Assembly (NCBI GenBank): GCA_025594325.1
Contig: JANHCV010000014.1
Coordinates: 248,001 to 312,000 of the forward strand
Length of the DNA: 64,000 nucleotides
Direction of reading: 5' to 3'
Source: Blastocladiella emersonii ATCC 22665
Taxonomy: Eukaryota > Fungi > Blastocladiomycota
The notes below the pieces were generated by a model, which saw only the letters and a list, made by a program, of their open reading frames with translations, was not told the origin of the DNA and searched no databases. How positions within the stretch are numbered: position 1 is the first letter of the stretch; the number at the start of each line of letters is the position of its first letter. The position numbers and the translations under genes were made by a program. This document shows, in pieces, positions 3,150 to 58,377 of the stretch.

Positions 3150-5108
3150 ATGCTCGTCACCAAGTACAGCATCCTGGTGCTCCTCGCCCTGATCGCCGCC
3201 ACCGAAGTCTCGGCCACGTCGCCCAAGAAGGCGTGCCGCAACAAGCCCGGCCAGCACGGCGGCAACGGCTCGTACAACGGCGGTTCGGGCTCGGGCTCGA
3301 GCGGCAACGGCGGTTCGGGTTCGGGCGGCAACGGCGGCTCGAACGGCGGCAACAACGGCGGCAATGCCGGCCAGGTGTGCGAGTCGCCGCTCGCCGAGCA
3401 CCACCCGGGCTCGACGCTGCTCAAGGGCAAGTGGGCGACGTACACGGGCAAGAACCAGGCGACGCCCAAGGGGTGCCGCCCCAAGAAGAACTTCATCTTC
3501 ATGGTGTCGGACGGCTTCGGCACCGCGTCCGAGACCATGGCGCGCGAGTTCTACCAGTACGGGTCGACGGGCACCATTGCCGACGCGCTCGGCGACGTGG
3601 ACGGCATCCTGCCCCTCGACACGCTGCTCGTCGGCTCGGCCCGCACCAAGTCGTCGGACGCCTGGGTCACCGACTCGGCCTCGGCCGCCACCGCCTTCGC
3701 GTGCGGCCTCAAGACCTACAACGCCGCCATCGGCGTCGACCCCAAGCAGAAGCCGTGCGCGACCGTCCTCGAGGCCGCCAAGTTCAAGGGCTACAAGACG
3801 GGGCTCGTCGCCACCTCGCGCATCACCCACGCCACGCCCGCCGGCTGGTCGGCGCACATCATCGAGCGCGACTGGGAGAACGAGATTGCCGCGCAGCAGA
3901 TCGGCGACAACGTGCTCGGCCGGTCCGTGGACGTGATGATCGGCGGCGGCGCGCGCCACTTTATCCCGAAATCGAACAAGGGGTCGTCGCGCAAGGACGA
4001 GCGCGACCTGCGCAAGGAGGCCGTCGACAAGTTTGGGTTCAGGACGGTCGTCGAGTCGCGCGCGGCCCTGCTCAACGTCACGGGCAAGGACGTGCCGCTG
4101 CTCGCCCTCATGGCCGGCTCGCACATGGACTACGAAATTGACCGCAACAAGACGGCCCAGCCCAGCCTCGCCGAGATGGCCAACGTCGCCCTCACGCTGC
4201 TGTCCGAGGCCACCTCCGACTGCGACTCGCCCGGCTTCTTCCTCATGGTGGAGGGCTCGCGAATCGACCACGCGGGGCACTCGTACGATTTCATTACCCT
4301 TTGCGGCCGTGTCCGCGACGTTTGCTCGGAAGCGACAAACTAGCGCCCGGAGGCGACAAACGACCGCTGCAAAACAGCAATCTGACGCGCTTCCACGCCG
4401 CCGCTTCCATCGCGTAGCAACGACGTCGCCACGCACATGCACGACATCCTCGCGTACCAGGACGCGGTCCACCTCGTCAAGTCGTACGTCAAGGCCAACC
4501 CGGCCACGGGCGCGCTGTCGGTCTCGGACCACGAGACGGGCGGCCTGACCAAGGGCGCACAGGTCGACCAGTCCAAGGACCCCGGCACCTTCTACAACTG
4601 GCACCCGGAGGCGCTCCTCGCCGTCAAGATGTCGGTCGAGAAGCTCTCGCCCATCATCGCCAAGGCGGCCGACGCCGGCATCGAGGCCTTCGTGACCGAG
4701 GCCGTCGCCAAGAACCTCGGCATCAAGGACCTGGCCAAGCCCGAGCTCGACGCGATCCTCGCCGCGCGCGCCGTCACCAACGCCAAGAAGGCGCCGTCGG
4801 GCGTGTACCCGCTCGACAACGCCCTGACCGAGGCCGTGTCGCGCCGCGCCTGGGCCGGCTGGACCACGCACGGCCACACGGGCATGGACGTCAACCTCTA
4901 CGCCATCAACGCGCCCGGGCTCCGCGGCAACGTCGACAACACGTACCTCGCCAAGTACTCGGCCGAGTTCCTCGGCGTCGCTGACGCGCTCCCGACCCTC
5001 ACCAAGCGCCTCGCCAACCAGAAGGTCACCGCCGACACCCCCGTCGCCACGAAGCGCAGCGTCGGTCCCCGCGACGAGCACCACCGCGACGAGCGCGTCT
5101 ACCACTAA
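3150..5108 (+). CDS. PHO8: Alkaline phosphatase (PHO8/PhoA family), signal peptide, 2 exons (intron 4283-4417)
   Basis: Motifs FMVSDGFG, VTDSASAATA (Ser nucleophile), LVATSRITHATPA, MVEGSRIDHAGH, SDHETGG and THGHTGMDV. Removing the GT..CTGAC..TAG intron gives in-frame HAGHSNDVATH. Hydrophobic N-terminus; stop TAA. Confidence 0.93.
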
Positions 5109-7482
5109 GTGTGTGCGTTGTGGTGAGAGTGGGTGACAATGGGAGTGATTGTGATATACATATACGACGAGCGCTGCTCGAGCCTTTCTACTTGATCTCT
5201 TATTTACTTGCCCTGTGAGTGTGGCTGGCGGAACGCAAGTGGTCGGTCGAGAGAAAGGGAATCTCGCGCCGCGTCACGCGAGTGGCGCATCGCGTCCAGC
5301 TTCGAGTTGAGGGGAGCAATGTGGCCGTTGCAGGATGGACGACTTCCAGCTCTCTCGCGTCGTGTGCTCCTTCTCGATTCGATTCAAACCTTCACTCTCG
5401 CCCGACTCTCAACGCACTGTTCCGACCGCGTCAGCGAGGACAGCAAGGCGGCGCGAACAAGGTGTGCGAGCAACGGACGTGTTCCAATCTATCCAACAGC
5501 TCCTCGACCCACACGCCAAGCGAACCCGACCATGATCCCGAGTACAAGAAGCCCCACCCACTCGACCTAACCAACGCCGCGAGCAAGCTGTGCGAAGAGG
5601 TGTCGCGCCATGCCGCGAGACAAGTGCATGGTCGGGTCCGGGTTAAGACTCGGGTGTCGGTACAGGTCAGGCTTAATTGTGCGACGATGGGGTGCCAGTA
5701 GCGAGCCAGGCGGTCGTGGGTACGGGGCCGTCCTGTACTTGCTGCTGTACAGCTTTGGCGACGCGCTCACCGTTGGCAACGACTCGGAGTCGAGGCCTTG
5801 TCGTGGCAGAGACGAGCCATTCATGGGCAACGAGGCACGAGAGGTGCTGGTCGGCGCAGAAGTAACAGCGACGGCCATGCGCAAGCCTGGAAGCTCGCAG
5901 TGCCGAATTCAACCAAACGTGCAAGTGGTAGAGTCGGACCGACCTGCTGGCGAGGAGTAGTGTTGCGCCGTGTTGAAAGACTGGCCACGGTCGATTCGGC
6001 CGCATTTCGACAGGAACGCGCCGCGCGGTACGCTTCATGCCCAGCTCGGCCCCGCGCTCCTGGCTGTGTTGCATGAAGATGCTGCGCCGCAATGTGCTGG
6101 TGATACGCGATACATGGGAGCGAGGAGTAGAGAGCACTCGAAAGCAGCGCGCGTTCAACCATGGACTCATGAGCGACGCGTTCTCCTCGAGGTCCCGCGA
6201 AGGACACGCACAAACGGGTACATGTTGTTCGGGTACATCCGATCGCGTTGCGGCCCCCTCACACCGGCAGGTCCGCCATCCCTGCAACGTCGAACCCGGC
6301 GGCGCGCTCCGCGTCCAGCATGCGACCGTGGTGCAGCAGCAAGAGGCGATACAGGACCTTGATCGCGGACTCGGCGATCCCGACCTGCTTGGCCACGTCC
6401 TTGACGGACTGCGGCGACCCGACCAGCTGCGCGATGAAGATTGCGGCGGCGCCGTGGATCGTCGCCGGCACGCGGGCCGCGAGCTCGTCGACCTCGCGCG
6501 CGTTGCGTGCCACCTCGGTCACGAGGACGCGGGCAGGCCCAGCGCATCGCACAGCCGCGCACTGACGTCCGCCGTGTCGCGATGCACGCGGGCGGTGTCC
6601 AGGAGTCGATTCACCTGGTCGAGCGCATCCACGGCCGAGCGCTGCGGTTCTGTTCACAAGCAGCGTCAGCCAGTCATGGCGCGGACCGGACCGTGTTGAG
6701 CGAACGGAAGCGTACTGTGTTCGGCGACACCCGCCGCGCCCGCTGTCACCTGGACGGTGCGCGTGACGCCGTGTCTGCGGCAGCCGAGGAAGACGCACAC
6801 GGCGGCCAGCTGAGCGGACCTTCTGCCGCTTGAGCAGCACCGGGTCCGCCTCGACCGCGGTGCGGAAGCACAGCTTGGCCGTACCGACAAGCGATCTGGG
6901 AGGCCGAGTTTCTCGCCCGTGATCACAATCTCCTTTGCTGCTGCCCGTGCTGCCGAGAGCCAGTGACTGCTTGGCGCGGATACTCGCCAGACTCGATGCA
7001 GAAGCGTCACCGCCGCGCACCACGGGCAGGATCGCGGTCCTCATTTCACCGATCCCCGCTGACGCCTCTCTCAACCATCCCGACACGCGCGACGGCACGG
7101 CACGGTACACCTCGCTGCGCGCGCTGGCGGCAGGAGTCGGGATGCGCGGCGACGAGGACGGCATAGCGGGCGCGTTACAGTGGTTTGGGTTACGAGTTCT
7201 CAACAGCCGCAGCCTCAAAGCACCGATGCGCGGGAGTGAACGACGTCGTGGGAGCGTGGGCCAGCTGCGGGCGGTGGCGAGCACTTCAAGTACGGCGGAC
7301 GGCCGCACACTCAATGCCGGAGCTCACACTGGGACTGACTTGATTCGGATTCATTTGCTTGCATCGACTGAGGGAGCGAGAGGGGTCGCCTGCTGGTGGC
7401 GGACACTTGGCGGACGTGGACAGATCGCCGTGACCTGAAGCGGGCATCACATGAGCCAGGCGTGATTGTTCGACGCGTCTCA
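3523..7482 (+). repeat. Inverted repeat 1, left arm (A); pairs with 20555-24514
   Basis: Six-frame ORFs in this interval have identical mirror ORFs with coordinate sum 28037 (e.g. 4437..5108+ / 22929..23600-, 6259..7314- / 20723..21778+). Both ends were checked by eye. Confidence 0.97.
6259..7116 (-). pseudogene. SUA7: TFIIB (SUA7-like) pseudogene, frameshifted
   Basis: TFIIB-like pieces in shifting frames: SE..VPSRV, AAKEIVITGEKLGLP, QLAAVCVFLGCRRHGVTRTV, ARLCDALGLP, PATIHGAAAIFIAQLVGSPQSVKDVAKQVGIAESAIKVLYRLL. One GT..CTGAC..CAG intron relic and several frameshifts. Confidence 0.75.
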
Positions 7483-7829
7483 CGACTCGCGTCTCGCCAC
7501 TCTGTTGCTTCTCTCCGCAGAGACTGCGTCCGAAGGTGTCTCCTGATTAAGTGCTGCCTTAAATGGTTGTAGATCGCGCTGCTCACGGTGAGCATCGAAC
7601 CACGAACATACACGCCCGCGTGAACGACTTCGGGAAACTCTTTGGCTGGTGTCGCTCACACTGGCCTTGACACGGTCAGGCTCACGTATCGCGGGAGCCA
7701 GAGGTCATGCCAACGGGACACCTGTCGCTGACACGCAAGGTCGCTCGCTCTTCGCGCATTCCGCTCTTCCTCTCGAACACACTTGTTCACAAAGTCAAGA
7801 TATATTGGAGCGCAACGGTCAGGACTTCA

Positions 7830-9930
7830 TCAAGCGATGAGCCAGTAATCACGCGGCACATAACCCCACTTGCGCACCTTGTCGTCCGTGTGCGCCATGG
7901 CCCACTTGCGCATTTTCAGCAAACGCTTGCCGCATCCTTGCTCGCCGCGCGAGGCTGCGGCCTCGAGCGCAAGCTTGAAGAAATTGAGGAACGCAATAAT
8001 ACGTTTACCTTCGTGCTCGGCAAGGTCAGCAAAGTCCGTGTCTGTGAGTTCGAGCGGCATATCTGGCCGAATGAGCGCAGCTATGGCCACATCGTAAATG
8101 TCATTGCGAATACGAGCTTGATCAAGCACGTCGAAGATCGTAAGCCCGAGACCGTTGATGCCACCGTGGAGGCACGCATCACGCCCGAGTCCGCCGCGAA
8201 TAGCACTGGAATCGGGTGTAGGTGCGAAGTGGGGTGAGCGGTACTTGAGGAGATTTTCAAGCGTCGTCCCTCGAGCGCTTTTGACAAGGCTGATCCAGCC
8301 AACGCGCAGGCGGCTGCGCATCAAGTCGCCTTGCTGAACCAAGATGCGGCGTTGGTGCTCGACCAGTCGCGCCGCATTAGCTGCGAGCTCCTCGTCCGTG
8401 TACGGGTTGACGCGAAAGACAAGGTCGCCGTCAAACGGCCAACTGTAAAGTTTGTCGTTGGCCGCGAGGTTTACAAGATCGTCGCAAGGAGGGCAATTAA
8501 CAAGGCTGAATGCTGGCTGTGACCCCCAGCACTCGTGGTAGGGAAGGACTGGAACAGCATCCAGAATCGTTCGAGCTGCGGGCCACGCGTTGGCCCTGAC
8601 GCACACGTGGCGGAGCGTATCAAGCTGGTGGACGTGATTGCGGGTTGGAACCCAGTGCCGGCACATCCAGGACGCGTATGACGATGCGGCATCATGGGTT
8701 TTAATGAGCATGGGCGACCACCAAAATTGGAGCAAGTGGTTGAGTCCAGCCAAACCGTCGAGAAGCGTGTCCATGTCAATGCCGTCCGCGGCGAGGGTGA
8801 AGTAGGGAAGCACTCGATCAACTAGTACTTGGACAGCATCATCATCATGTGGCTCGATTTGGATAACATGTGGGATGTAGAACAAGACATGCTCGGCCGC
8901 AGCCCAATCGTTTGTCGGGGACAGCCGCGGACGAGTGACAAGATCTGCTGATGAAAGAACAACCAGATCAGCAAGTACCGCAAAGGAATCGAAGCCGAGT
9001 GAATTCTGGACACGCGCGTGTTTAGTGGCCTCTGTTACAAACGCCTCAATCAGCGAACGCGCGTACGAAGGCTGCGCCCAAGCGAGGATGCGCGACATGG
9101 TCCCAACGACTGCTTGGGGCCCAATGGCAAAGAGCGTGTGGAAGCTTTTCGCATCAACTGGTCCTCGGACCACCGGGTATACGCACATGAGCGACGCCGC
9201 CTCGAATAAAAGGGTGGCATACACGGGGTCATCGGGATTCGCACGCACGGCGAATAGGCACTCGACGATGCTCAACACATTCGGCAAACGGAGCCCGAGG
9301 CCGCCTCCCTTCCGTGAGTCTTGTGTGCTGCGGTATTTGATCCATGCCGAAGGGACACCAGTCACTCGATCGCGCCACGCCCGTCAGAATGTACGCGAGT
9401 GCATGCGGCGAGCCCGTTGCACGATAGCCGGCGCACACTTGGTCAGCTGGAAACGCCTTGGTCCCGAACTCGGAGTTTGCTGACTACGGAGGCGCCGAAA
9501 AGAGGAGGTCGCGGAACTCGGTGGTCGTAAGCGGCACCTGGCCCTTGGCCCACTCGCGGAGCCACGACCACGGACGCGGGTCGCCCACGTCGCTGAGCAC
9601 GAGTCGGCGGGCGACATTATGGAAAGTGGTGCGCATTTGAACGTTGGAAATCGACGGTCAACGCGAAACCCTGCCGCGGTGGCGACCTCGTTTGCGACCG
9701 TGGTAGACGGGTGCGACAGCAAAGAACGCGTCGCGGTCCATCCCGCTCAGGGCGATCGTCATTTCGAGAGCGGGCGGCGCATGTGCGCGCCAAAGCGGCC
9801 CGGCAAGGATGGTGCGGCACGTTGCGCGGAGAGCGAGTCGGTCGGCATTCGACAACCCCCACGACGCGATCGATTTGAGCACATCGTCGGGTAAATCCGA
9901 GAGTGATAAGCACGTTTCATTAGGTAGCAT
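7830..9930 (-). pseudogene. F-box-like protein family A, disrupted copy
   Basis: N-terminal LSLSDLPDDVLKSIASWGLSNADRLALRATCRTIL. Later segments (DVGDPRPWSWL, ALAYIL, WWSP, GINGLGL) match the 14189-16186 protein but are split by frameshifts and a TAG at 9484-9486. The 3' part is a 511-aa ORF. Confidence 0.6.
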
Positions 9931-10148
9931 AGCGGAAACGTTTCATGGATGGGTGTGCGGGAAGAGGCTCAAGGCTCAGCAGCGGTCGTTCAAGAGAGCG
10001 CGACGTGAACACTGTCTCGCCTCCTTGATCAGCTCCTTGATTACTCACGGCGGCGCTCACGAATGTTTGGCGGTAACGGTTTCCGGCCTTCAAAAATAAT
10101 AGAATCAACATTTATATTGCTAACCCAGCCGAGCCGCGTCCGCTGGAC

Positions 10149-11977
10149 TCAACGTCGCACCGCTTGCAACGCTCGCTCTTTCCCGCGCGCCTGCTTCTCG
10201 TGCAGCATCGTGTCGAGCGCGATTAACGCATTGTGGGTTTTGGCTGTCGCTGGCATCTCACGGATCGCGTCGCGAACCACAGCCTTCTCGATGTCGCGCG
10301 GCGCGATGCGGGCCAGCTCGCGCACCGCGAATAGGGCGCCGAATTGAGTGCGTGCCACAACATGGGCGGCGAGGTTAGCGAACTTGGCCTCCTCCCATCG
10401 GCCGTCCATGAGGCCGTCCGGGACGCACTACCAGAACTCGAGCGGGAGCATGTGGGCCGTCGGGTTGGCCAAGAAAATGTCCAGGATGCCCTGCGGATCC
10501 ATGCGCAGCAGCAAGGCAGCCAGACGAAGTCGAGGAAGCCGCAAGGCGAGCTTGCATTTACAAGGCAGCTCGCCCTCGTCCTCGTCCTCGTCCTCGATTT
10601 CCACATCTTCCCACAAAATCCCCGTGAAGAAGCCCCCGGGAAACGACTCCCGCAGAAGGATCGAGGACAGCATCGTGGCGCGGAACGACAGGTCGGAGAA
10701 ATGAAGCTCGCCGCCGTGAATGTCGATCAGTTCGGTGAGCGTGTCAAAGTACGATCCCTGCAATTGAAGCGGGCACTCGGCACATGAGATTTGACCGTTG
10801 CCGATGGGGACCGCGCAGTGAGCTCGCGGGCCAAATACAGTGGCCGAGAGAAGCACCGAAATGTGCGCAGCAGCCGTGCCCAAAGCCGAAATGGCGGCCA
10901 CCGCCGCATCGTGCGTCGCCGGGTTGCGAAGCGCGGCCACCGTGAGCCATGCCATGATGGAAGGCATGTCGTTCTGGGTCTGCGCGACCGGCATCGAAAG
11001 TACCGTATTCGCAAGAAGAAACTGGGGCCAGTCCGCTTGGGCATAAGGGCGGTTGGCAAAGTGCGCGGTAAAGCCTCGCTCGGGCTCCGCACTCACGTCG
11101 AAGACTTCCTTGAGCTCGGCGGCAATGCAAGTGAAGAGCGACTCGACGCGGTCGGGGAAATGCCGGAAGGCGCACGCAAGGATCGGAACCGGGTCGGCTT
11201 CATGGTATATAGTGGTGTTGACCACTACAAGGATGGCGAAGAATCGGCGTTAGCGTGCGCAAGGGGAGTGTGATTTCAGTATTTCAGTAAGCGATGTGCA
11301 TCGTACTTTCAGCTCGCGCTGCCCCAAAATCGTCACCAAGACCTGGGATCAAGGTTTGCCCACACGGTCCACGGCAGCCGAGCGAAGAGCAGGGCTGGCG
11401 CCCGCGCAAGGGTTCGTCCAAGGACGTGGCGGAGAGCTACGGGCGAGCCCCGGCACACAAGGCCGACGAGGTTCTGAAGATATGAATGCAACGGAAACTT
11501 TGCCACTGGGAGGCACCGGTTCTCGATAATGTTGAATGTACCACGAAGCGCGTCCGAGACGCGGCTAATGTCGCTTGCCGACTCGCAAAGCACGGGCTCG
11601 GCCACGTCGAGCAAGCACTCCGTGGATGCAAGGAAGAGTGGTAGAAGCGAGTCAAACGTGACTGTATTCTGCTCGGGCAACTCGAGGAGACTGACCTTGT
11701 ACGTGACGAGGGCCAGGGTGACGTCTACGGTTCGCGGTGTCAAGCTATGGGCCATGAATAAAGTCTTCCACAAGCAGTCGATCCACACACTTCGCACACC
11801 CAAGTCACGACAGGGAGCAGCAAAAATGCGAGTCGCCAAGTTGACGGTGGTCCGTGGGGTGGCGAGCTGCAGCACCACCGCCAGGACCTCCGTCGGGAGC
11901 GAGGCGAGGTGGTTCATTGGGCCATAAGTCGCAAGTTTCACCAAGTGGTGATCAGTTTTCATGGGTAGTGTGTCCAT
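10149..11977 (-). pseudogene. F-box-like protein gene (resembles family B N-terminus), probably disrupted
   Basis: LASLPTEVLAVVLQLATPRTTVNLATRIF near the start; GTACG..GCTAAC..TAG intron about 11225-11306; in-frame TAG at 10428-10430 followed by further coding-like sequence to 10149. The upstream exon needs a frameshift to join. Confidence 0.45.
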
Positions 11978-12791
11978 TGCAGCATCGGGCGGGGAGGAAG
12001 AGCCCGCTTCGGTCGTGACTCGGCTTGACGATTCGGTGACCCAGAGCGCGGAGCACGCCGGGTCACCCGAGTGGCGCAACACGAGCCTCGCCACCTGCCT
12101 CGCCACCGACGTCTGCGGTCGGCGGGTACACAAGGGCCATGAAGCGTCTCGATTCACTCTATTCTCTTCTCGCGGCGTTGAGCTACTTTCAACCGAGAGA
12201 GCTCGATTTCGCGCCAAACCCGTACTTGAGCCGATGTAAGAATCCGTCTCCCTTCAGAACGGTTATCCGCAAGCGAACCTCAGTCCACTTGAGCACCCTT
12301 GTCCGCATGCGCCTGGCCTTCTTACGCGCATCCGCCGTATCCGCACAACCTTGCCTTCCTCGCCGCGCGGGCCAGTAGCTATGGGTGCGCACTCTACGAG
12401 ACCCAGGAACTGAAGAGTTCTGTCAAGACAAGCGTGTTAGGCGAGCTCGGCAAGCGCTGCACCTTTCAAGCCAAGCGGTACGCCCGGCCAAGGGAACGTG
12501 GCGACGGTGACGCTACAGATCTCGGTCGTTGTCTTACCACCTGCGAGCATACAAGAACCGAAGCTAAACTTTGCAAGCGAGACCACAATGTGAAGATTGT
12601 GGGCCCGGACCGTCGAGGCCCGCGTGCGAGGGCACGCGTAGGGGCCGGTACCGCTGTGTATCGCGCAGGTGCCTGCTACGGGCGGGAGTACGCTGAGCAT
12701 CTGAAACGTAGGCATGAGAGCATGCATGCAGCGCGAGGAGAAGGGTCCGCCGTACTGCCTGGGACAGCTTGAATCGCGGGCAGCCACGCGG

Positions 12792-13357
12792 TCAAAATGC
12801 CTGTGACTCGGCCGCGCGAAGCCGTGAGTGCGCACGCGAGCGCAAACGGCAATCCCTGTGCACGATACCCTGTCCAGACTTGACCAGTCGGAAGCACCTC
12901 AGTACACGACTCGAGCCAGGGCGGACGGCGGGAGCGCAGGTAGGTGGGCGCCGCGGAAGTCGTGTACCGTCGCGATGAAGCGCCTGGTCCTTGGCCCACG
13001 CGTGCAGCAAGGACCACGGGCGCCGGTTGCCCACGTCGCTGAGGCCGAGTCGGCAAGCGGCAGCAAGGAATGCGGGGCTCATTTGGAGGCTAGGCGTTGG
13101 AGATCGGCAGTCGCGACAAACACTGCAAGAGTGCCCACGTTTTCAGCCGCGGACGGGCGCGACGGCAAAGAGCACGTCGCAGCCGGTTCCGCGAAAGCCA
13201 AAGGTCGTCTCAAAGGCCGGCGGAGCGTGTACGCGCCATGGCGTGCCGGCGAGGATCGTTCGACACGTCGCACGAAGCGCGAGCTGGTCCGCGTTCAACA
13301 ACCCCCACGACATGATTGCCTCGAGCATAGCTTCGGAAACATTTAGCAGATCCAGGC
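12792..13357 (-). pseudogene. F-box-like family A 5' fragment
   Basis: IMSWGLLNADQLALRATCRTILAGTPWRVHAPPAFE and LSDVGNRRPWSLL closely match the 9550-9930 region. It is frameshifted and has no 3' part. Confidence 0.65.
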
Positions 13358-16186: not shown

Positions 16187-16463
16187 GGGTGTTGCGAGTA
16201 CAGAGAGCGAGCAGGAGTGGTGACCGGAGTGACGCGTTCATCCGAGACGCGTCGCGCGGCGGTGGCGCGAGTCTTCCTCCACTGATCCCGAGCGAGACGG
16301 CGGTCATCGACGCCAACAAATTTTCTGCTCTGCCGTGAATAACGCGCGACAGCGCGTTCAGGTTTATTAACGATAATACATAGTGTTCCACGACAGGAAG
16401 GACACGGACTATTGACACACAAAGCTCGGAGCGCGAGGTTCCTGAGAACACGCCGCGCTTCCC

Positions 16464-20353: not shown

Positions 20354-20354
20354 T

Positions 20355-44871: not shown

Positions 44872-45121
44872 ACTCTGTCTCAACACCATCCTGTGGTCGA
44901 ACCACGTCGTATCGAGCGTCGAGCGAGTCACTGTCAAAGACAGATGCAAAATGCACTTATTTTTGTTACAGCTCGTGAGCCGGTGCTGAATTGACATGGC
45001 AAATGGACTGGCCGCCCGCGCACGAGCGACCCCAGGCGGGAGCGAGGCAGCACACCGTCGGGGCGGAGATAGAAGATAAATAATCACGTTTATTGCAATC
45101 GAGATACACGCAACGAGGAAA

Positions 45122-47692: not shown

Positions 47693-49318
47693 GGTGTCGT
47701 CGCAAGGGGTGGTCCGAGAGCGAGCATCGAACGCCTCGACGTTTAAAATCGCCGCTGCCCGCGCACGTGATGTCTCGCGCATTTGTCTCACGCGGCGCGA
47801 GCGAGCAACGCCGACAGACTCGATTGGAACGCAATGGGGAAAAGAACAATTTATAACAATAAAACATCAATAATGCGGGGCCAGGAGGCTCGTCAAAGAA
47901 CCTGGCCGCGAGGTGAGGGGCACCGCGATACCTGCTCTTGTTCTGAAGTCTTTCGCGGAACTCGGCAGACTCCGCAAGCTCTCCAGCGGCACCCCGAATC
48001 TCAGCAAGTAGCTCGTCACGGCTCGCGTCGTCAATCTTGGGCGTGAGGGGCAACTTGAACAAGATCCCACTCACGATGCTGAGCGGCCACTCGGGCGAGT
48101 ACCGATTGGCAAGCACGCTGCGCGGGAGCACGGCCCAGACCGGAAACGGGTCCTAATGCGAGAGAGACATCATGTAGTTCATGGTGATGTAAGGCTCAAC
48201 GGAGCACAGAAAGTGGACAAGCCTGACGTCGCGGGAGGCGGGACTGTCCGTCCCGCTCGCGACCTCGGCACGCCAAAGCGGGTACGTTTTGGAAAGGGCC
48301 TTTCTCGAAAGGAAGACAGGGAACATCCAGCTAGGGACGTTGTTCTCTGTCAGCTTGAACTCGGGGATCTTGGTGAGCACGGAGTGGACGGCGTACTGCC
48401 ACGGCTGCCTGTTCGGATCAGGGAGGTCTGAAGGAGGCGGCCGCGGGATCAAAGAGACGGTACGACGGCAAGCAACGAGACTGCAAAGCAGACCGCGTTC
48501 TGCAAGGTCGGCATATGTGAGGTGCATGAGCTGCGAAGCCGCAAACGCATCCACGTTCCAGCCAGCTTTGAGAGCGACATCGTTGCGGACGTCAGGCATG
48601 AGAAGGGAGTGAATGTGCCAGTGCGCGCAAGGGACCCAGAAGGGGCGGCGAACTTGAGCAAGGAAAGCAAGCGTGTCATCAACAGTGGTTTGATCGCTAA
48701 GCGGCGCGGAAAGTAGCGGACCCATGTGAGCTGACACGCGAAGGTTGGGAGCCACCGCGAGATAAATGTTCCGTTTACAAACCAATTCGTGGTAGCACTG
48801 GAAGAGCTCCAACGGCGAGGTGAAGGCGCACATCACGGCGAGCATGTCGCCAATTGCATCCATTTTGGCCAGCGCGGCGAGCGAGACCAGGTCAAAGCTC
48901 ATGGCAGAACCGCCCCATGCGACGGAAAGGTCGATAAGCAACTTGAGCTCAAGCAGCGTCTCGCGGGTGCCACGCTCGATTGCAACAGGGCCCAACGATG
49001 ACCACCACGCGTGGCTCCTTGATTCAAAGCTGACAGGGCAGTCAGCATCAGCAGAAGACCTCAGGGAAAGGTGTGAGCGGAGTTGAGAACATATTTGGGC
49101 CGTCTGAGGATTGGGATGACCTCGGGCCGCCACCATTTGAGCGCGCACAAGGCAAGGTACTCGATGAGCGTTGAAGCGGGCCAAAGACAGCCCCGATTGA
49201 GGCTGTGAACGTGGTGAGTAAACGATGACATGATTCCGGTGCTGATGCTGCGGGCTCGTGGAACTCGAAGAACGTGAGCAGGAGGTTGATCGTTGCGCGC
49301 GGCGCGCCGTGGAAGCAC
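47679..49318 (-). pseudogene. F-box-like protein family B copy 3, 5'-truncated (in-frame TAG 48153-48155)
   Basis: IEYLALCALKWWRPEV, TLLELKLLIDLSVAWG, HMGPLL, QPWQYAV and AESAEFR match copies 1 and 2; the N-terminal part is missing. Confidence 0.7.
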
Positions 49319-49504
49319 CCGTTCCGCACCACTAACACAATCGAGTTCTTGGCCACGGCAAAGTCGGGGTTGGCGAGGAGGAGAGCGAGACCCCTTGATC
49401 TTGCCCCGCCGAGCCGCGACGCGACGCGACGCGCCGCCGAGCCCATGTCGGAGCGGCGGAAGAAGAAGCCGTAGCCGCCGACGTCGCTCGTGGCCGCGGA
49501 AGAA

Positions 49505-52500
49505 GCGCGTCGGCCGCTCGTCGTGTTCTGCGGCCTCATTGCGTCGAATCGCACTACACTCGGGCGAACCTTGGTCAGTATCCGTGGCAAGTCATCGAGC
49601 GAGAGAGCGGCTGGCTTGCCGCGTACCCACCCACCGTAGTGTCGCCCGCCACCCGAGCCTTGGCCGCCGTGCTGCGCGGCAAGCTTGCTATCGAGTAGTG
49701 GAAGCAGGCCGACGTGTGGAGGAAGAAGAGCTTGACGCGCGCGTCGCAGCAGCCTTGTTGACCACGAACGACGTCGTCGATGCTGCTCGCGAAACGGACG
49801 GTCGGCATTGTCAAATTGCCGCCGTTTTGACTCGAAGCACAATGAACCGGGCGTCAGCTCTACTAGCATAGCGCGGCGAGCGAGCAAGGCGTGAGTGATC
49901 GATCATCGGCTAATGAGCGGGGGTTGCAGCGACCGACCAGGAAAACACGTTCCATGCTGGACGACGACCTGCTGCGCCGCCGCCGACACGACCACGGCGA
50001 CGACTTGGACTCGAGCGTGCGCGCGCATAGCTCGGGGATGAGAGTCGTTGGTTCGTGTCGCGCGCGCTCCGAGCCTGATCATGTCGCGCGCGGGTCATGA
50101 ACCATAGTCGATGCCCTCCGCGGCCATGGCGACGGCGTGAGGCCACGGACACGTGCTGCTGGGCTGGACGATGGCGAACGCGAAGCGTGGCGAGGCGTCG
50201 AGGTTGCCGAAGCAGCAGATAGGCGACCACGAGGATGATGATCCGGACACGCTTGAGGAAGAGGAAGAGAGACGGTGGCGATACGATCGATCGGCAGCTC
50301 TCGTTGAGAGCGTGCATCGCCTGCTCGGAGGAACCGGGTTTGCGCGCGTCAGCCCGCCGCATTCGAAACCACTACGCGCAGAAGAGGCGGAGCGTACCGT
50401 CACGGAAACAAAGTCGTTGTCGTTGTGAAGCACCGCTGGTCGCGGTGGCGGCAGCGTCGAAGATGGAGGCGAGAACGGAGGCGAGAACGGGCGCGCGGAG
50501 GAAGAAGGACTCAAAGACGGTCGAGTTGGCTACACGGCGGATGCTGTCGCGCAGCTCGGTCAGTATGAGCCGCCGTGGGGATGGTCTCGTCTCGTCTTGT
50601 CTCGTCTCGTCTCGGCCACGCGTACCGATATCATCGAGTTGTCGTGTGATCCGCCCGCGGCCGCGGTTCTCCTTGATCTTGACCTCGTCTCGGTCGACGC
50701 GTACATGACTCGGAGCGGTGGTGGAGATGTAGCCGCCGAGGCCGTCCGTGTACGTGTACGTGTACGTGTACAAGGCGAGCAGCTGGCCGCGGACAAGCGA
50801 GCGACGACGCGACAGCTTGTTGTCGGACGCGGTACGGCGCGCGAACACGAGTCAGATCGATGCGGGCGAGGAGAGGTAGCGCGGCTTCCATCTACTAACG
50901 GTCGCGGAGAACAGGCGTCAGCGATCACAGGCTTGGGGCATGGGTATGATCGGAAGAAGGAAGAAGGTGACACGTTCCAGGTACGCTGCTCGAGTGCTGC
51001 TGAATGTCGGTCCACTCGTTGATGCCGTAGGTCGTTTTTGTCGTCTCGTGGATCGTGATGAGCTCGCAGTCGATCATCCCGTCGTTCATCTCGATCTCGT
51101 GTAGTTCGTGGCCGTCGCCTCTGCTGCGCGAAGCCGAGGTTGCTGACGATCACCGAGTCGTCGTAGCCCTTCTTGAGCTCGCGGCCGAGATGCGTGCCCG
51201 AGTGCATGCCGTAGGTGTTGGAGTAGTCGTAGTTGTCATCGTCGCGCGCCAACGGAGCCCCGGCCGTGCTCCGTTCGGGAGATTCCAGCCCTCTAGGCTC
51301 GAGCGACGCGTCAGTTTCCCGTGACGACGCGGCGGCAGGAGATCGGTAGCGTACCTTTGGTGTCGTACGACCGCCAAGCTGGCGCGGCGGCGGCGGCGGC
51401 GGACACAAACACGGCAATGTCGGCGGGGCGCGGATGATGATGATCTGGATCGACTTGGAGCGCTGACGAAGCGAGGCGGGATCACGACGCGGACGCACGC
51501 GATGGGCCATGGACATGGCGGCGGCACCGGAAGCATTCGCCGCGAGAGAGTGGCCAGTCAGACTGTCGCGCGCGAGTACTTGGTCGAGGCCCACACGATG
51601 AACTTCTAGCGCAAAGCGCAGAGCGCAGGGCGAGCGAGCAGTGTGTGAGTGGTCGGTCATGTTCGCACGAGTGAGAGATCCAGCGCGACACGTCCCAGGT
51701 TGACGTTGACCTCCGACCCCACCGCGTGACGCTCGCCGCCGACTTGAGCTGGCCATTCGCGTTGCGTCGCGGCGCGGCGCGTCGCGTCGTGTTGTGGCTG
51801 GCCGGAGCTTGGTGGTCGACGCGCGTGCGTTTTTGTCGCGAAAGTCGATGAAGTCGATGAAGTCGACTCGTAGAAGCCGAGGCGCTGTTGGTGAGAGCAC
51901 CGTGTTGAGCGTGAGCTTGGCCATGGACCGCAGTTGATGATCGAGACGGTCTGGCGGCGGCCGTTGCATTTCTGGAACGACCGACGTCGGGGCGCCCTGC
52001 AGCGTCTTGAGGTCGTCGCAGAGGGGGAAGTTGAGCTTCGACAAGGGCAACGACGAGTACGTGAGGCTCAGCCGGCGCCGCGCGTAGTATTGGTCGGCGA
52101 AAAGTCGTGTGGTGTCGTACTCGCCCTAGCTCAGAGCGACGCGTCAGTCACGATTCTGTGGGTGGCAGCGAGCACTTTGTGCGTACCTTAAGCTACCCCG
52201 CGGCTCGGCTTGAACTCGGTGCGCGTGGTCTCGGGGATGGACGACGACAATGGCCAGCTTGGACTGCTGCTCCTTGCCGTCCGACCCGCGGCTTGAGCGA
52301 GTCATCATGACCACGACCATGGCCATCATGGCCGCGCGCTCGATCTCGACCAGCGAGCGAGTCCTCGAACCAGTGTGTGCGTGTTGAGCTTCTCGATGAG
52401 CGCGAGCCGGCCCACGCCCGATGCTGCTGCTGCTGCTGGCCTTGAACGCGCGCGTGCTGGTTCTCGGGTCGTCGTGTGTTGCCGAGGAGCACGAGTCGCC

Positions 52501-53902
52501 GGAATCGAGAGTCACGGCGAGGATCTGGTGTGAAGTGCAGCAGCGACAGCAAGATGTGAGTGGTCATTGGTGATACCTTTCGTGGCGACCGACGACGAAG
52601 CGACGACACGTACCATCCATGCAGGCGCAATGTACACCGCCCGCCATCTTGGACTTGAGCGCCGCACGGTCGGTCGAGCTTCGAGCGTCGAGCGCCAATG
52701 CCGTACGTTGAACGTGAGCGTCGTGCGTCTAGCGCGGCCGACTTGAGGCGTTGTTGTAGCGTATTGCCGTAGTAGTAGTCGAGCGACTTGGTCCCTCGAA
52801 CTTGCGCGCGCGGCCCCCGCCGCAGGCAGCCGCGCAACGGTTACTACAAGATCGGACGTGGGTGAGCAATGAGGGCATGGCGACCACTACGAGACCATGA
52901 AAACTCGTACCGTCGCTCTGCTTGAGGCAACGGTCGAGAGGAAGCGGCCGTGCTGCGAGAACTGGGCGAGAAACACGAGGAGCAGTTAATGGTCGCGGAC
53001 CAGCCCGCCGTCGCCCCCGCCGCCGCCAGTACAGCCGGTCGAGTGCGAGCTTGAAGTCGTCGCTGCTGCGCGGAAGCCGCCGACCCAGGTCAGTGACAAG
53101 CCGAGCGACGGGTGTCGTGAAAACGCGCGTACCGTCACCGAGTCGTTGCTGCCGCAGTGGGATCCACGCGATCCACGTCGAACTTGACCTGCATCTTGAC
53201 GCATCGATCACCGACGGCGACGCGTTTCGATGAGAGCGCCACGAGTCGGAGCACGTACCAGCCGGACGTTGAGGGGGAGGAGCGTGGATGCCTGCCTGGA
53301 ACGACGTGCGCCGCGTCAGCAGAAGCCGCGAAGCGTGTTCTTGGCGTACCAGATGTAGCAAAGGTGCCGCCGAACATGACCGAGGGCACGCGGAGGCGAA
53401 AAGTGGGATGCTGAGGGCTCGTGGCGATGTTCGGTCGGTTTACACGGGTGGATGCGCGGGTCAGCATCGACGACGACCTGCGGAATCGACCGTCTCCGTA
53501 CCGGACATGATCGGAGCGGATGGTGCTGCACGGCGTTGCGAAAGGAGTGCCGCCACCCCGTGTGTCATGTGCGACGAGCGGTAGTGGTACACGGAGCTCT
53601 GGACGGTGACCGGCCGCGTCGATCGAGCGGCCTGCTCGCGCGCGTCGACACGCGTATACTCGGGCGCGGGCCGCGAGCACGACGAGTAGTCGCAGGTAGT
53701 GTTGCAGGGACACGCGTGCGGAAGAGGAAGGGTTGATGGCATTGCAAGGAGTCGACGGGTTGTGACGAGAGAACAAGTTTTCCGACGCGTCGGTGCGACG
53801 CGTTTCCGGATACAACGCGCGGGTGGCGCGTCTCGCCGACGCGTCTCCGGTGGCTCCGAGACAAATTCGCGCGCGCACCTGGCCCCCGGTGACCGCGAAG
53901 CG
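49505..53902 (-). repeat. Inverted repeat 2, right identical core (B)
   Basis: Reverse complement of 26524-30921 (coordinate sum 80426). Confidence 0.97.
50096..53206 (-). pseudogene. Identical second copy of the degraded GH-like gene
   Basis: Mirror of 27220-30330 inside the IR2 arm. Confidence 0.3.
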
Positions 53903-55467
53903 CAGCGATTTTCGTTTCGCGTCCACACGAAAACCAATTATCGAGACCATATCAAGTCGCTTGCGTTGGTGCGTGAGCTCTGCGCCTGCACCTGCACCAG
54001 CGTTGCGACAGCTCTCCCAAGCTTCTGCGTCCCAACTCGAGCGCATTGCGCCACAGCCGCATGGCACGCGCCATGGCGTCACCACGACTCTCACCCACGT
54101 TCACGATGGCGGCCGTCCCGCCCTCCCCTCTCTCCTCACCGGCGCGTTCACAGGCGTCTTGCGGTATCATGGACCGCAGTAAACTGGCGCGACTGCCCGC
54201 GACGGCGGTCCCGAGGCCGCTCCGACAGGCTGCGACCCTCGGCGCGCCCGGGAGCCGCCTTGCCGGTCCAGGCGGGCGTAGCGGACCCAATCGGCACCTT
54301 TGAGACAGCCAGATGTTCTCTGAGACGCGCCGACACGGTCACACGAGGAGATCCGGCTTCGGGTGCATGCCGCGGCCGTGCTCCAACATGGCCAACGCGC
54401 TCTCAGCCCTCGCATGGCAGATCTGTTCGCATCCACATCACATTTTCATCGTCGTCATGGTGCTCATGACCGAGTCCGGCGGCCCGAGCCGTGTCGCTGC
54501 AACACGTCTGTCTTGGCCTGCCGAGGGCCACTCACCTCGCGACCGCACCGCGCCGCCTGTCGGTCGGTAGAGGATCGCCTTACATATTGCTGCATGAGAT
54601 CGACGAGAAGACCTTGAACCATGAACTAGCGAGCGCTGCAACTGCTCCTCGATGTTCGAGGACGCGTTTCGATGCAACGCGCAGGCCCTTGCCGCGTCCC
54701 CCCGTGTGAGCCCCGCGAACACCGACCGACCGCGTCAGCTCACGCGATCCTCGCACTTCTACTTCTTCAGCCGGTCATCGACCATGCCTGAGCGTCGCTC
54801 GATACGAGTCCTATGGATGGACTCTGTGGTGTGAGGTGCCGCATCGCCACGAACACCGAGTCGAGCCGGCCGCCGCCGCTCTCTCCCTCTGACACCGCTC
54901 CGCCGCTCCGCCGCGAACGCATCGAATGGAAACCGGCAAAGACTTGCTGCATTCTGTCTCCCGGGTGTCCTTCATGCTCTCGTTACCACGGACCGGCTGG
55001 ATTCGGCGCTGCCGGCGCTGTGTGTGTCGCACGGCCGCACTCGGCTGCGCCTGAGCTCCGCGACGTCGATCGTTACACACACCGTGGCGGCAGGTCCTCG
55101 CACATCTGTGCGCCACGGTTTGAGGTCTGGATCGCCTTCGCGGCCGTCGTCCTGCGCTTGCACGCATGAGAGCCGAGGTCCCGCTCGTTCGCGTCACTGT
55201 GTCGGTCTGGCACATGGGCTTCATCAGTCCACTGGTACCTCGCGTGTGGACCGAGATACGCCCTTGAACCTTAATACGACGCGTCGGCGGCGCGAATGAA
55301 CTGCGCGAGACGTTCCTGCGAGACCTCCCGTGCCTGCCACTCGCGCCGCTCCGCGCGTATTCCGCCGACCTTCCACCAGCACCCCTGCTTCCACATCGGC
55401 CTGCTCTGTGTGAACGTCGGAGGGTTGACTATTGCGTACATTCATCCCCACCCTCCCTCCTCCTTCC

Positions 55468-58377
55468 TCAGATATAAAACTCTGGACTCTCGAGCCGCCC
55501 GCGACCCTCGACCCTGCCCGGCGCCCCGTCCGCGGGCGGGAACAGGAGGTACTTGTACGCGGCGAGGAGGAGGTCCTTCATCGCGGGCCACGCCATGACG
55601 TGCTGCGTGCGCTCCACGGTGCCCGACAGGTACTCCTTGCGCATCAGAGGGAACCGGATGAGGCGCACCAGCTCCGTCATGGCCACCTGGTGCTCGGCCG
55701 TCGCCGCCTGCGACCACTGCAGCGGCCACCCGCCGCCACTGGCGCCGCCGGCGCGGGGTGAGCCGAGCGGGTCGAACGGCGCCCTGAGCGGCGACGTGGC
55801 AACCGACACGAGCGACGCGGGCGGCGGCGGGTGGTGGGTAAAGGCGGAGGTGCCGGTCAGCGGGCTCGTGTTGCCGCGGCCCGACGTCGACGCGAACCGG
55901 CCGCCACCGCTGGTGCTGCCGCCAAACCCGCTCGACGCCGTCGACCCGAACCCGAGCGCCGAGTCGCCGACGCTCCCCGCGGCGCTCCCGCCCGTCCCCG
56001 TCCCCGTCCCCGCCGCGGACGTGCGCGCAGGCGCCGAGTGCAGGCGGTCATGCGGGAACTGGCCCGTCGGCGCGGACGGCTGCTGTGCCGTCGCCGCCGC
56101 CGCGGAACCGGGAGCCGCCACCTGCGCGTGCGGCGGTGGGCGCAAAGGGCCCTCGAAATCGAGCATCGGGTCGTCCGCGAGGAACGCGTCGAGCGCCGAC
56201 TCAGCCGCGAGGGCGGACGGCGACCCCGCGGCCGCTGCGCCCGCGTCGTCCTGCGTCTCGCCGCCACCGCCGCCCGCGTCGAGCTCGGTCGGGACGTGCT
56301 GCGTCGGCAACCCCGCGTGCTCGACGTCGACGTCGAGGGACGGCAGGTCGGGCTGCGGGAACACGGGCGAGTGGACCCCACCGTGCTGCGCTCCCGCCGT
56401 GGCCGTTGGGAACGGGCCCCACGGCGACGCGGGCGCGGCGCCGAACCCGGCCGCGCCGCCGCCCGTCTCGTGGACGAGGGTACCGGGGATCGCGAGCGGG
56501 TGCGTGCTACGCGTACGAGCGCCGGCGCTGCCGTCTTCGAAGCGGGCTGCGACCCACTCGGCGAAAAAGTCGAACACGCGCTCCTCGGACTCGACGTTGA
56601 GGCGGTCCGCCGACAGGATGGCGCGCATCAGGTCGAGCGTGATTCCGGCGATGCCCTCCTTGGCCTGCTGCAGCGACGCGAGGGAGGACGGGTCGTGCAG
56701 GAAGTCGCCGCCGCCGGCCGACGTGGCGACGGACGCGTGGCGCGACCGCGCGGGCCGGGCGTGCGCGGATGTGCTGCCGCCCGTCGCGACGCGGTGATGG
56801 TGATGGATGAGCGGGGACCGCGCGGGCGACCCGACCACGTTCTCCCCGCCGCCGGCGCCGGCGCCGCCCGCGAACATGAGCAGCGACGAGCTCGCCCGCG
56901 ACTCGCGGACGAGCAGGGTGCATAGGCGGTCAAAGTGGCCGGCGATATACGCGAACGCGCGCATCTCCGTCGCCGCACAGTGGAACCGCCGCGCGAGCTC
57001 CCACACCTGCCAGACGTTGTGGTCGGTGACGTGGAGGCGGACGGCGCGCATGAGGACGGGCGCCCACGCGTTGACCTGGAACCGCTCGGCGGTCTCGAGG
57101 CACGCCTCGAGCTCAGGCAGCGTGAGCGAGGGGAGGATCGATGTCGACGACGGCTGCCGGTACATCCACCCGAGCATGTACTCGAAGGCGACCGGGTCGA
57201 CGTGCAGGATCCGGACGCCGCGGTGCGCGGCTGCGCTCGCGTCGGCGAACTGCGACGAGAAGAGCGCCGCAAAGTACGGGGATTGCGCGGCGAGGAGCGA
57301 GCGGAGCACGGGGAACACGACGGGGACCTCGCGCTCGTCCCAGCTGACGTGCAGGAAAGCGTCTAGTCGTGATGAATCGAGCGATCAGTGACGGTTCAAT
57401 GGAGTGAGAGCACTGGGTGCGCGTACCCGCGAACGCCTCGGACTTGAACAGCGCGTCGAGCGGCGACGGCGACACGATCTCGGGGTCGTCGACCGTGGCC
57501 AGGATCGTGAACCGCACGCCGACGTAGATGGCTACTCGCGCACGACGTCAAGCCCCGCTCACTTCCTCTGCACCAACCCGTCCGCGTCGCGTACCATCAT
57601 CCTTGATCAGCGGCGCGACCTGGCCGAGCGTCAGCAGCGTCTCCTCGCCCCACGTCGGGTGCACTACGCGCCGCGCGCGCGTTAGCGACCGCGGTCCACG
57701 GCCACCGTCCCGCTCACGTACGCGAGGAGAACCAGACGGGCCGCTCGTGGCGCATGTACCCGGCGAGCCGCGTGTCGTTGGGGCTGCCGATCATGAAGGT
57801 GATCTGGATCTTCTTCTTGACCGCGTTCATGGGCACGTCGCACCCGAGGTACAGCGAGAGGACCTGGTGGCGGCGGCCGCGGCGCGGCGGTCAGATCCAC
57901 CCGCGATGCGAGCGAGCACAAAATGACGTACGTTCGGGTTCCGCGGGCGGCCCTTGTACACCTTGAGCGTCCACGGCAGCGCGTCGGCGCGGAACACGGG
58001 CGACCGGTACTCGGCGAGCGGCGACAGCTGCGACCACGGCTCGACCTTCCAGCTACACGTCCCCTCCTGCATCAGCACCATCCCGCTCTCCCACCCGACC
58101 CCCGCATCGCGTACCGGTACGTATACTCGAGATCGTGCTCCCACCGCTCAAACTCGCCGGCGCCGCCCACGCCCGCGGCGCCGCTGACACGCGACGCAGC
58201 GAACGACGACGCGGCGCTGAGCGACGATCCGGACGACCCCGCGGTCGGCGGCAGGCTCGGGAACACGGTGGCCGAGCTGCCGTTGCCGCCGACGCCGCCG
58301 CCGAACCCGGGCCCCGGCCCATGGTGCATAGTTGGGACCTGGTCTGTGGTCATGGCGCGGCGGAGTTGCGGCCACAT
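55468..58377 (-). CDS. MATH-BTB(-BACK) protein, SPOP-like Cullin-3 adaptor, multi-exon
   Basis: MATH: TCSWKVEPWSQL..YRSPVFRADALPWTLKVY, LSLYLGC, PTWGEETLL..LIKDD..IYVGVRF. BTB: LFKSEAFADAFLHVSW..FPVLRSLLAAQSPYFAALF..VDPVAFEYMLGWMY. BACK: NVESEERVFDFFAEWV, LVRLIRFPLM. Several short GTACG..AG introns (e.g. 57363-57426). Confidence 0.88.

Follow-up and report, generated by a model that had tools for sequence, protein, structure and literature searches.

Two abutting inverted repeat pairs in Blastocladiella emersonii, probably kept identical by gene conversion

Results and Discussion

A 53-kb region of contig C6 of Blastocladiella emersonii ATCC 22665 contains two long inverted repeats that lie back to back, each enclosing a spacer of its own, in the order A-X-A'-B'-Y-B. 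We consider it probable that the two pairs formed independently, that gene conversion has homogenised their arms, and that they are joined at an old end-joining scar. If the pairs indeed have separate origins and copy-correction keeps their arms identical, the locus would be an ordinary structure for a palindrome-rich genome rather than a virus-like switch.

Anatomy of the locus

The window that we analysed is a stretch of 64,000 nucleotides (C6:248001-312000), and all positions below are counted from its first letter. The first-pass annotation of this DNA had described the A-X-A'-B'-Y-B geometry, and self-BLAST together with an ungapped comparison of the window recovered both inverted pairs as claimed. 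The arrangement is genuine in the assembly, and matches of 4 kb without a mismatch cannot have arisen by chance. Copy number and orientation of the arms are those of the published assembly, which was built from HiFi reads (~190x, mean length 10.5 kb; PMC9730499). The features of the locus are as follows.

3150-5108, plus strand: intact alkaline phosphatase gene (exon ORFs 3150-4343 and 4437-5108)
3504-7528, plus strand: arm A, perfect over the core 3523-7482
7483-8029, plus strand: inward extension of the A homology in diverged form (71-77% identity; 320-bp indel)
7529-20508: spacer X (12,980 bp), with lineage-specific ORFs and an old internal direct repeat
20509-24533, minus strand: arm A', containing an alkaline phosphatase copy that lacks its 5' end (24533 down to 22932)
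24534-24602: junction filler between A' and B'
24603-26523, plus strand: outer part of B', a diverged member of the B family
26524-30921, plus strand: perfect core of B' (4,398 bp), which pairs with 49505-53902
30922-49504: spacer Y (18,583 bp), with a 17-bp minisatellite
49505-53902, minus strand: perfect core of B, partner of 26524-30921
53903-56405, minus strand: outer part of B, diverged from B'
55468-57318, minus strand: BTB-BACK ORF straddling the outer end of B (Pfam BTB, E = 4e-10; BACK, E = 7e-10)

The setting of the locus on C6 has many repeats and a lower G+C content. Neither tRNAs nor Rfam families were found in the window, so the structure is not a tRNA-bearing palindrome.

Pair A carries part of an alkaline phosphatase gene

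The claim that A starts inside a phosphatase gene holds insofar as the arm begins in exon 1; the gene itself can be specified as an alkaline phosphatase. Its exons match Pfam PF00245 with E = 1.2e-74 (profile positions 1-275) and E = 2.1e-06 (profile positions 280-421), and homologues of this enzyme are present across fungi. Arm A comprises the 3' four-fifths of the gene and 2.4 kb of downstream sequence, and it occurs only twice in the genome. Both copies (3537-5105 and 24500-22932) match the annotated protein H9P43_009255 (478 aa), which begins at an internal Met. Synteny between this locus and the phosphatase locus of B. britannica was not found.

An ungapped comparison of 3504-7528 with 24533-20509 covers 4,025 bp with 0 gaps and 18 mismatches, all of which are confined to the two edges (3509, 3515, 3522 and 7483-7523). 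The core between them, 3523-7482, is free of mismatches over 3,960 bp. At the outer edge 16 of 19 bp match, and the inner 46 bp are ~67% identical. Sensitive blastn traces the homology further inward in two alignments (7440-7594 with 20597-20443, and 7916-8029 with 20448-20337).

Pair B belongs to a dispersed family

The ungapped comparison of 26524-30921 with 53902-49505 revealed 0 mismatches in 4,398 bp. This identity is complete over 4.4 kb only, and B is thus not the uniform repeat that the first reading of the sequence had made of it. The inner edge is frayed for 50 bp, to 30971/49458. The outer extension, 65-80% identical and with many indels, reaches approximately 24603-24625 on one side and 56383-56405 on the other. 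The gene that the outer end of B interrupts had been called MATH-BTB; Pfam identifies BTB and BACK, and the ORFs tested upstream yielded no MATH domain. The first 600 bp of the outer part of B' are what remains of the C-terminal part of a BTB-BACK gene, truncated on the 5' side.

Nor is B an end peculiar to this island, as had been supposed: it is a member of a dispersed family that numbers at least 40 copies, the others being 70-88% identical. The perfect core exists in two copies. Other family members align unbroken across both core boundaries, which rules out that the core is a separate young insertion. The family is non-coding over the core and flank that were tested. Among its indels 31-38% have lengths that are multiples of three, and its mismatches follow no codon phase. 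Pfam produced no match in the ORFs of the B core or in ten ORFs of other family copies, and a PDB sequence search with the B core returned a single match at chance level (E = 0.24). We could consequently discard the notion that the core is a gene or a transposon, given no Pfam match, no codon phase and indel lengths that are random with respect to three; a carbohydrate-enzyme-like gene in the core is equally unsupported by domain match or coding signal.

Outside the core, B and B' are not sisters. The flank of B' shares 82.9% identity with the C21 copies, compared with 72.8% with B, and the last 600 bp of B are 86.8% identical to a copy on C3 and 84.4% to the copy at C6:586 kb, compared with 79.4% to B'. 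A clade of B and B' is rejected by the AU test at p = 0.034, a modest value from a test that was run after the tree had been seen. By these measures pair B has arms of greater age than their identity would imply. Ectopic conversion between members of the family could obscure how the B flanks really evolved.

The A'|B' junction and the spacers

The gap between A' and B' measures 69-91 bp (24534-24602 or 24624). Within it lies a direct copy, ~50 bp long and ~80% identical (24557-24604), of the phosphatase coding sequence at 24139-24186. The best 31-mer of this scrap matches at 28 of 31 positions, against a maximum of 23 of 31 in 30 shuffles. The phosphatase paralogue on C3 has no match to it and is excluded as its source, and no further copy of the filler was found elsewhere in the genome. 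The alkaline phosphatase and BTB-BACK copies face each other at this point and both lack their 5' ends, in agreement with the initial description of truncated genes. Beside the junction, identity to the outer arm is 100% on the A' side (to A) and 73-79% on the B' side (to B). The best reading of these observations is an old end-joining scar.

A second high-identity copy was found for neither spacer, and a sensitive self-comparison detected no direct homology between X and Y. The two share an old inverted paralogy at the protein level only (X 17.8-20.3 kb with Y 45.2-48.4 kb). X contains an ORF with a BTB domain on the minus strand (16464-17345); Y contains a pair of DUF4470 genes in old inverted orientation and 3.1-kb tandem duplicates. 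Atlas look-ups with the largest ORFs of both spacers returned only low, uninformative scores. Parts of X (10166-16255 and 16746-16812) are colinear with a paralogous block at C6:587-593 kb. In the larger paralogous region, C6:575-593 kb, the X homology comes within at most 490 bp of a B-family copy, A' is absent between them, and the orientation of X relative to that copy is the same as its orientation relative to B' in the window.

How the locus may have formed

At the edges of the cores, identity falls sharply from perfect to 65-80%. Gene conversion leaves such a signature: a perfect core with old, diverged homology on its borders. We infer that this process homogenised the arms. Pair B would then consist of two old, non-sister family members that lie 18.6 kb apart in opposite orientation, and in which a 4.4-kb stretch was equalised by non-reciprocal homologous recombination, with the diverged flanks priming either gene conversion or gap repair. 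Pair A would be an inverted duplication, probably old, of which 3,960 bp have been kept identical through arm-to-arm conversion, while the parts beyond the reach of conversion (the outer 19 bp, the 550-bp inner continuation and the junction scrap) drifted to 71-90%. The A'|B' contact would be a non-homologous joint that received 69-91 bp of filler, including the copied phosphatase fragment, and left both gene copies beheaded. Host homologous recombination between the 4-kb identical arms could occasionally flip X and Y. Such flips would leave all arm/spacer junction sequences as they are, and the locus bears no mark of regulation.

Some considerations weigh against this scheme. If the origins of the pairs were fully independent, the meeting of their arms within 91 bp would be a coincidence, unless one fragile site served both. 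Furthermore, the initiation of conversion between copies of 75-80% identity is inefficient in model yeasts.

Alternative explanations

The age of pair A is the point at which a different history comes closest to the data. The diverged A edges and the junction scrap are the sole pointers to arms that are older than their identity implies, and all three of these unconverted relics show a similar old divergence. An old duplication maintained by arm-to-arm conversion is most likely in our judgement, even though a young duplication fits the identity of A equally well, provided that errors of copying account for the scrap and the edge mismatches. In such a history, at the right end of X a fork that had broken or a chromosome end would have invaded the short, diverged inverted homology at 7483-8029, break-induced replication would have copied A backwards for 4 kb, and the product would have been joined to the truncated B' by microhomology or by polymerase-theta-type end joining with a templated insert. 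This possibility, which we hold to be unlikely though worth serious consideration, accounts for 3,960 bp of A without a mismatch, for homology that is found at the inner edge only while the outer edge stops abruptly, and for the paralogous block that lacks A'. Templated scraps are typical for joints of this kind, and inverted duplication mediated by inverted repeats is well known (PMC11293582, PMC10766183). What a very recent event does not lead one to expect is the same old divergence wherever conversion cannot reach: the scrap is merely ~80% identical to its template across ~50 bp, the outer edge matches at 16 of 19 positions, and the inner continuation stands at 71-77%. Another proposal derives the entire central A'B' block from one event, either as an inverted copy of the B|A junction of a 53-kb island that had circularised or duplicated in tandem, or through a single chain of three template switches. 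The geometry is consistent with this, both central gene copies are cut exactly where the outer arms end, and the filler resembles a repair scar. However, the two sides of the junction are unequal (A' at 100%, B' at 73-79%), the flank of B' groups with the C21 copies and not with B, and B is a dispersed family. The linkage between X and B' already exists in the paralogous block that lacks A'. A tandem duplication followed by a central inversion predicts X and Y as direct repeats, and no direct homology connects them. The first-pass view of the central block as a copy of the end-to-end junction does not survive this comparison, and we regard a single origin as distinctly improbable.

We can be firmer still about artefacts of assembly, by chimeric reads or a mis-resolved graph, which are scarcely credible as the source of the inverted copies. 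The cores are perfectly identical, and Pilon polishing with short reads might in principle wipe out small differences (PMC9730499). Yet one duplicated locus cannot yield a unique filler, frayed diverged edges and distinct outer flanks of B and B'. Invention by the assembler is very unlikely because the sequences of the junction and of the frayed edges occur nowhere else and because HiFi reads with a mean length of 10.5 kb span the 4-kb arms; fold-back reads are no explanation either, since the spacers of 13-19 kb are longer than a single read. Recombination between the arms might actively invert X and Y independently of each other, and so often that four isomers would coexist in a culture, in the manner of class E herpesvirus genomes. 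The arms, at 4 kb and 100% identity, and the spacers of 13 and 18.6 kb fall within the size range in which inverted repeats inverted segments of 4-103 kb in Candida albicans (PMC6591007), and the evidence for conversion implies that the arms interact. Against flip-flop stands the finding that the assembler resolved one path through four identical 4-kb copies, which may point to a single prevailing orientation. X also lies in the same direction relative to B' as in the paralogous block, flips would not change the arm/spacer junctions and hence no switch is evident, and no recombinase was found among the ~40 large ORFs scanned. Flipping of X and Y is plausible, but at a frequency that keeps four isomers in a culture we consider it unlikely.

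As to the enzymes involved, approximately 40 of the 70 window ORFs of at least 200 aa were scanned with Pfam, and none contained a recombinase or transposase domain above threshold. This agrees with the original remark that no recombinase is evident, and the perfect cores bounded by diverged homology agree with its companion claim that host homologous recombination acts at the locus. A site-specific invertible switch of the invertase or shufflon type is a poor description of the locus, with no recombinase among the ORFs scanned and with arms of 4 kb instead of tens of bp.

Wider meaning

At least seven other, exactly mirror-symmetric pairs occur on six contigs among the matches listed (C5, C15, two on C17, C19, C20 and C21). 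Large, perfectly homogenised inverted duplications seem very common in the B. emersonii genome; the words "inverted" and "palindrom" are both absent from the main text of the genome paper (PMC9730499). The present locus is one data point on these duplications, and an example of how fungal chromosomal inverted repeats arise and stay identical. Its two pairs differ in origin, copies of a dispersed repeat in one case and a segmental duplication in the other, which meet at a repair scar. A bolder and quite speculative idea, to which we assign low probability, is that dispersed families such as B seed template switching or conversion between diverged inverted copies throughout the genome, thereby making and keeping perfect palindromes, and that the two pairs recombine so frequently here that the 53-kb region exists in culture as a mixture of four isomers. 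If true, herpesvirus genome isomerisation would have a counterpart on a chromosome, with host recombination as its only driver. Orientation isomers, if real, would offer a natural assay for mitotic inverted-repeat recombination in an early-diverging fungus.

Comparison with known systems

The layout had been equated with that of class E herpesvirus genomes (ab-UL-b'a'c'-US-ca). The formal geometry stands: two unique segments, each with its own inverted repeats, and the internal copies adjacent. In class E genomes a terminal "a" sequence is present in direct orientation at both ends and in inverted orientation at the internal junction. The B. emersonii locus is without such an element, as a sensitive self-BLAST found no sequence that the junction has in common with the outer ends of A and B. 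The locus is also chromosomal, unlike a replicating and packaged viral genome, and its internal B' is no faithful copy of the terminal B. The likeness is therefore a formal analogy only.

Inverted triplications contain three copies with the middle one inverted, whereas A and the perfect core of B each occur twice. DUP-TRP/INV-DUP rearrangements (PMC11293582) and ODIRA (PMC10766183) share with A' a pattern of one junction in pre-existing inverted homology and one non-homologous junction with an insert. The present locus departs from them in lacking a triplicated segment and a third copy of A, in its large spacers, and in that the event appears old.

Long inverted repeats of Candida albicans drive inversions, as shown by PCR (Todd et al. 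2019, PMC6591007). Both cases involve a fungal nuclear genome, kb-length repeats that are highly identical, spacers that range from a few kb up to ~100 kb, and host homologous recombination as the driver without a dedicated recombinase. The inverted repeats and spacers described here lie within the ranges of that study. The inversions in C. albicans were seen by PCR, whereas our locus is known from assembled sequence, and repeat identity is 100% here compared with a median of ~98% there (PMC6591007).

With regard to the maintenance of identity, a parallel comes from human chromosome Y, although one pair here stems from members of a dispersed family and not from duplication in place, the arms, at 4 kb, are short next to spacers of 13-19 kb, and the gene content consists of truncated copies instead of amplified functional genes. 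The ampliconic palindromes of this chromosome are reportedly kept identical by arm-to-arm gene conversion, a finding attributed to Rozen et al. in 2003. Common to both systems are long inverted arms of ~100% identity around a unique spacer, which holds for both B. emersonii pairs (cores of 3,960 and 4,398 bp), together with sharp boundaries and, for pair B, evidence of arms that are older than their identity suggests.

Geometry of the Locus and Its Central Junction

Sequence comparison recovered both inverted pairs and the adjoining A' and B' arms, and the A-X-A'-B'-Y-B layout described in the first-pass annotation is therefore real in the assembly. The two central arms are separated by a gap of only 69-91 bp.

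Arms, spacers and genes at the arm ends (window coordinates)
3504-7528 vs 24533-20509, inverted: pair A, 4,025 bp, ungapped, 18 mismatches, all at the two edges
3523-7482: core of A, 3,960 bp, zero mismatches
26524-30921 vs 53902-49505, inverted: core of the B pair, 4,398 bp, perfect
up to 30971/49458: inner edge of the B pair, ~50 bp of frayed homology
to ~24603-24625/56383-56405: outer continuation of the B pair, 65-80% identity, many indels
12,980 bp: spacer X
18,583 bp: spacer Y
3150-4343 and 4437-5108: exon ORFs of an alkaline phosphatase gene (Pfam PF00245, E = 1e-74)
55468-57318, minus strand: BTB-BACK ORF containing the outer end of B

The genome comprises 32.65 Mb in 21 contigs, and the window corresponds to C6:248001-312000. 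PacBio HiFi reads (mean 10.5 kb, total 6.37 Gb, ~190x) were assembled with the La Jolla Assembler, and the assembly was processed with purge_dups and Pilon; the main text of the genome paper contains neither "inverted" nor "palindrom" (PMC9730499). Arm copy number and orientation are given here as in the published assembly, and isomer frequency is a matter of inference. The segment between the outer arm ends (3500-56400) is a repeat-rich compartment of distinct composition, with a G+C content of 0.57-0.65 versus 0.66-0.72 in the flanks. An RRM-protein gene (44-1270) lies in the flank outside the arms.

The outer end of A falls within exon 1 of the phosphatase gene, and the copy in A' is therefore 5'-truncated. 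The first exon ORF is 99% identical to protein H9P43_009255 of B. emersonii ATCC 22665; this annotated protein (478 aa) begins at an internal Met, and both gene copies match it. In the gene at the outer end of B we found BTB and BACK domains; the MATH domain proposed earlier was not confirmed. The first part of B' is a matching C-terminal relic of this gene. These truncations bear out the description of the A'/B' junction as a head-to-head joint with both gene copies beheaded. Within the filler between A' and B', ~50 bp are a direct copy of coding sequence from the phosphatase gene (24139-24186, ~80% identical); the best 31-mer of this copy matches at 28/31 positions compared to a maximum of 23/31 in 30 shuffles. 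This templated scrap marks the junction as a non-homologous repair joint. A phosphatase paralogue on contig C3, considered as a source of the scrap, gave no match.

B and B' as Members of an Old Repeat Family

Besides its two perfect copies, the B core has at least 40 further matches, spread over a dozen contigs and 70-88% identical; several are arranged in tandem with a unit of ~4.2 kb. The family also includes the diverged outer part of B'. Other copies align unbroken across both edges of the perfect core, which rules out that the core is a separate young insertion and identifies it as a segment from within the family unit. Over the core and adjoining flank (25.2-30.8 kb), mismatches between family copies lack codon phase, 31-38% of indels are divisible by three, as expected at random, and the ORFs of this region or of other family copies gave zero Pfam matches. 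As judged from these patterns, the family appears to be free of coding constraint over this stretch. One codon phase is somewhat enriched only in the outermost ~1.2 kb, the C-terminal part of BTB-BACK. Long open frames recur at one place in several copies (28376-29866 in the window; L007:2462-3553 and L008:2557-3648 in two sequences with further copies). Their low-complexity translations have no Pfam match and no codon-phase signal, and the frames are probably an effect of base composition.

Across the flank at 25454-26488, B' is 82.9% identical to two mutually identical copies on contig C21 and 76-77% identical to copies on C3 and at 585 kb of the window's own contig (C6), but only 72.8% identical to B. 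At 24625-25204, B is closer to the C3 copy (86.8%) and the C6 copy (84.4%) than to B' (79.4%). In a maximum-likelihood tree the C21 copies are the partners of B' (support 90/94). A tree constrained to unite B and B' is worse by 20.4 log-likelihood units (AU p = 0.034, weakened because the test was run after the tree had been seen). These closest relatives of the B' flank, C21:601898-606954 (+) and 214912-218644 (-), are inverted, lie ~383 kb apart and are identical over the aligned 1-kb segment. Flank divergence and tree topology indicate that B and B' did not arise simply as duplicates of each other. We infer that a perfect 4.4-kb core between non-sister flanks (73-79% identical) is the signature of non-reciprocal copying between two old family members. 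This copying could have occurred by gene conversion, or by gap repair primed in the diverged flanks.

Age of Pair A and Origin of the Central Block

Pair A has the same edge pattern as B, a perfect core with diverged margins. Past the inner edge of the core, homology continues with 71% identity (7440-7594 vs 20597-20443) and resumes beyond a 320-bp indel with 77% identity (7916-8029 vs 20448-20337). The outer edge matches at 16 of 19 positions before homology ends. Because all three stretches beyond the reach of conversion (outer edge, inner continuation and junction scrap) have drifted to 71-90% identity, we favour an old duplication of A held identical through conversion. A young break-induced duplication that produced A' is a serious rival to this drift-based reading, though we consider it somewhat unlikely.

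The central block had been proposed to copy the junction of a circle or tandem duplication of the whole 53-kb island. A one-step event of this kind predicts that the two sides of the joint have diverged equally and that B' derives from B; a tandem duplication followed by inversion additionally predicts that X and Y are direct repeats. All three predictions fail: divergence differs across the joint, the B' flank is nearer to the C21 copies than to B, and no direct homology connects X with Y, which eliminates the tandem-then-inversion route. The only relation between the spacers is an old inverted paralogy at the protein level (17.8-20.3 kb of X vs 45.2-48.4 kb of Y, 30-45% identity). In addition, a second block on this contig (C6:575-593 kb) is colinear with the window: it aligns first with X 10166-16255, then over 67 bp with 16746-16812, and last, through a B-family copy, with B' from 24603 on. 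The X-like and B-like parts are ~490 bp apart in that block compared to 8.4 kb in the window. X and B' were therefore either linked before A' was present or linked independently of it.

Mirror Pairs Elsewhere in the Genome

With only B-family and Y sequences as queries, searches revealed at least seven other inverted pairs with exactly mirror-symmetric coordinates and identical scores.

Other mirror pairs (contig, coordinate sum)
C20: 955,766, arm length at least 21.5 kb
C17: 2,125,458
C17, second pair: 1,338,200
C15: 2,553,263
C19: 2,203,130
C21: 820,542
C5: 1,600,304

By this measure the present locus is ordinary for the B. emersonii genome. Its one special feature is the abutment of two pairs, for which a shared breakpoint region, as opposed to a common origin, is the best explanation.

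On C20, seven match pairs (405585-427148/528618-550181) all sum to 955,766; the implied inverted arms are free of indels, measure at least 21.5 kb each and enclose ~100 kb of spacer. B-family matches run plus-minus-plus on C17 (1049993-1058946, 1066512-1075465 and 1163979-1172932) and on C15 (around 1264642, 1288621 and 1465456). Within each triple the first two copies mirror each other exactly, whereas the third, direct copy is displaced by a constant distance (113,986 bp on C17); these look like rearrangements of the inverted-triplication type.

Spacer Y contains an old inverted DUF4470 gene pair (31549-32107/44230-44788, 71% identical). It also has a tandem duplication of 3.1 kb (37649-39885/40794-42980, 66-71% identical). 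A perfect 17-bp minisatellite (40182-40379, 11.6 copies) covers the exact B/B' midpoint (40213). We take this position as chance (~1% a priori), since the older DUF4470 pair has another axis (38168).

Flipping of X and Y and Comparison with Known Systems

Host recombination had been named as the driver of the locus. This view is supported by the perfect cores, which are evidence of arm-to-arm recombination, and by the finding of no recombinase domain in the large window ORFs scanned. Since partner arms are identical, a crossover inversion within a core would recreate the same four arm/spacer junction sequences. The sole effect of a flip would be to turn X or Y around with respect to the surrounding sequence, and no promoter-to-gene link over a junction would be altered unless transcription runs through an entire 4-kb arm.

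The proposed likeness to herpesvirus class E genomes holds for the geometry only; it does not extend to an "a"-like sequence common to termini and junction, which the locus lacks. Inverted repeats similar to these in length and distance have been shown to invert segments of 4-103 kb in Candida albicans (PMC6591007). By analogy with this system, occasional flipping of X and Y is plausible.
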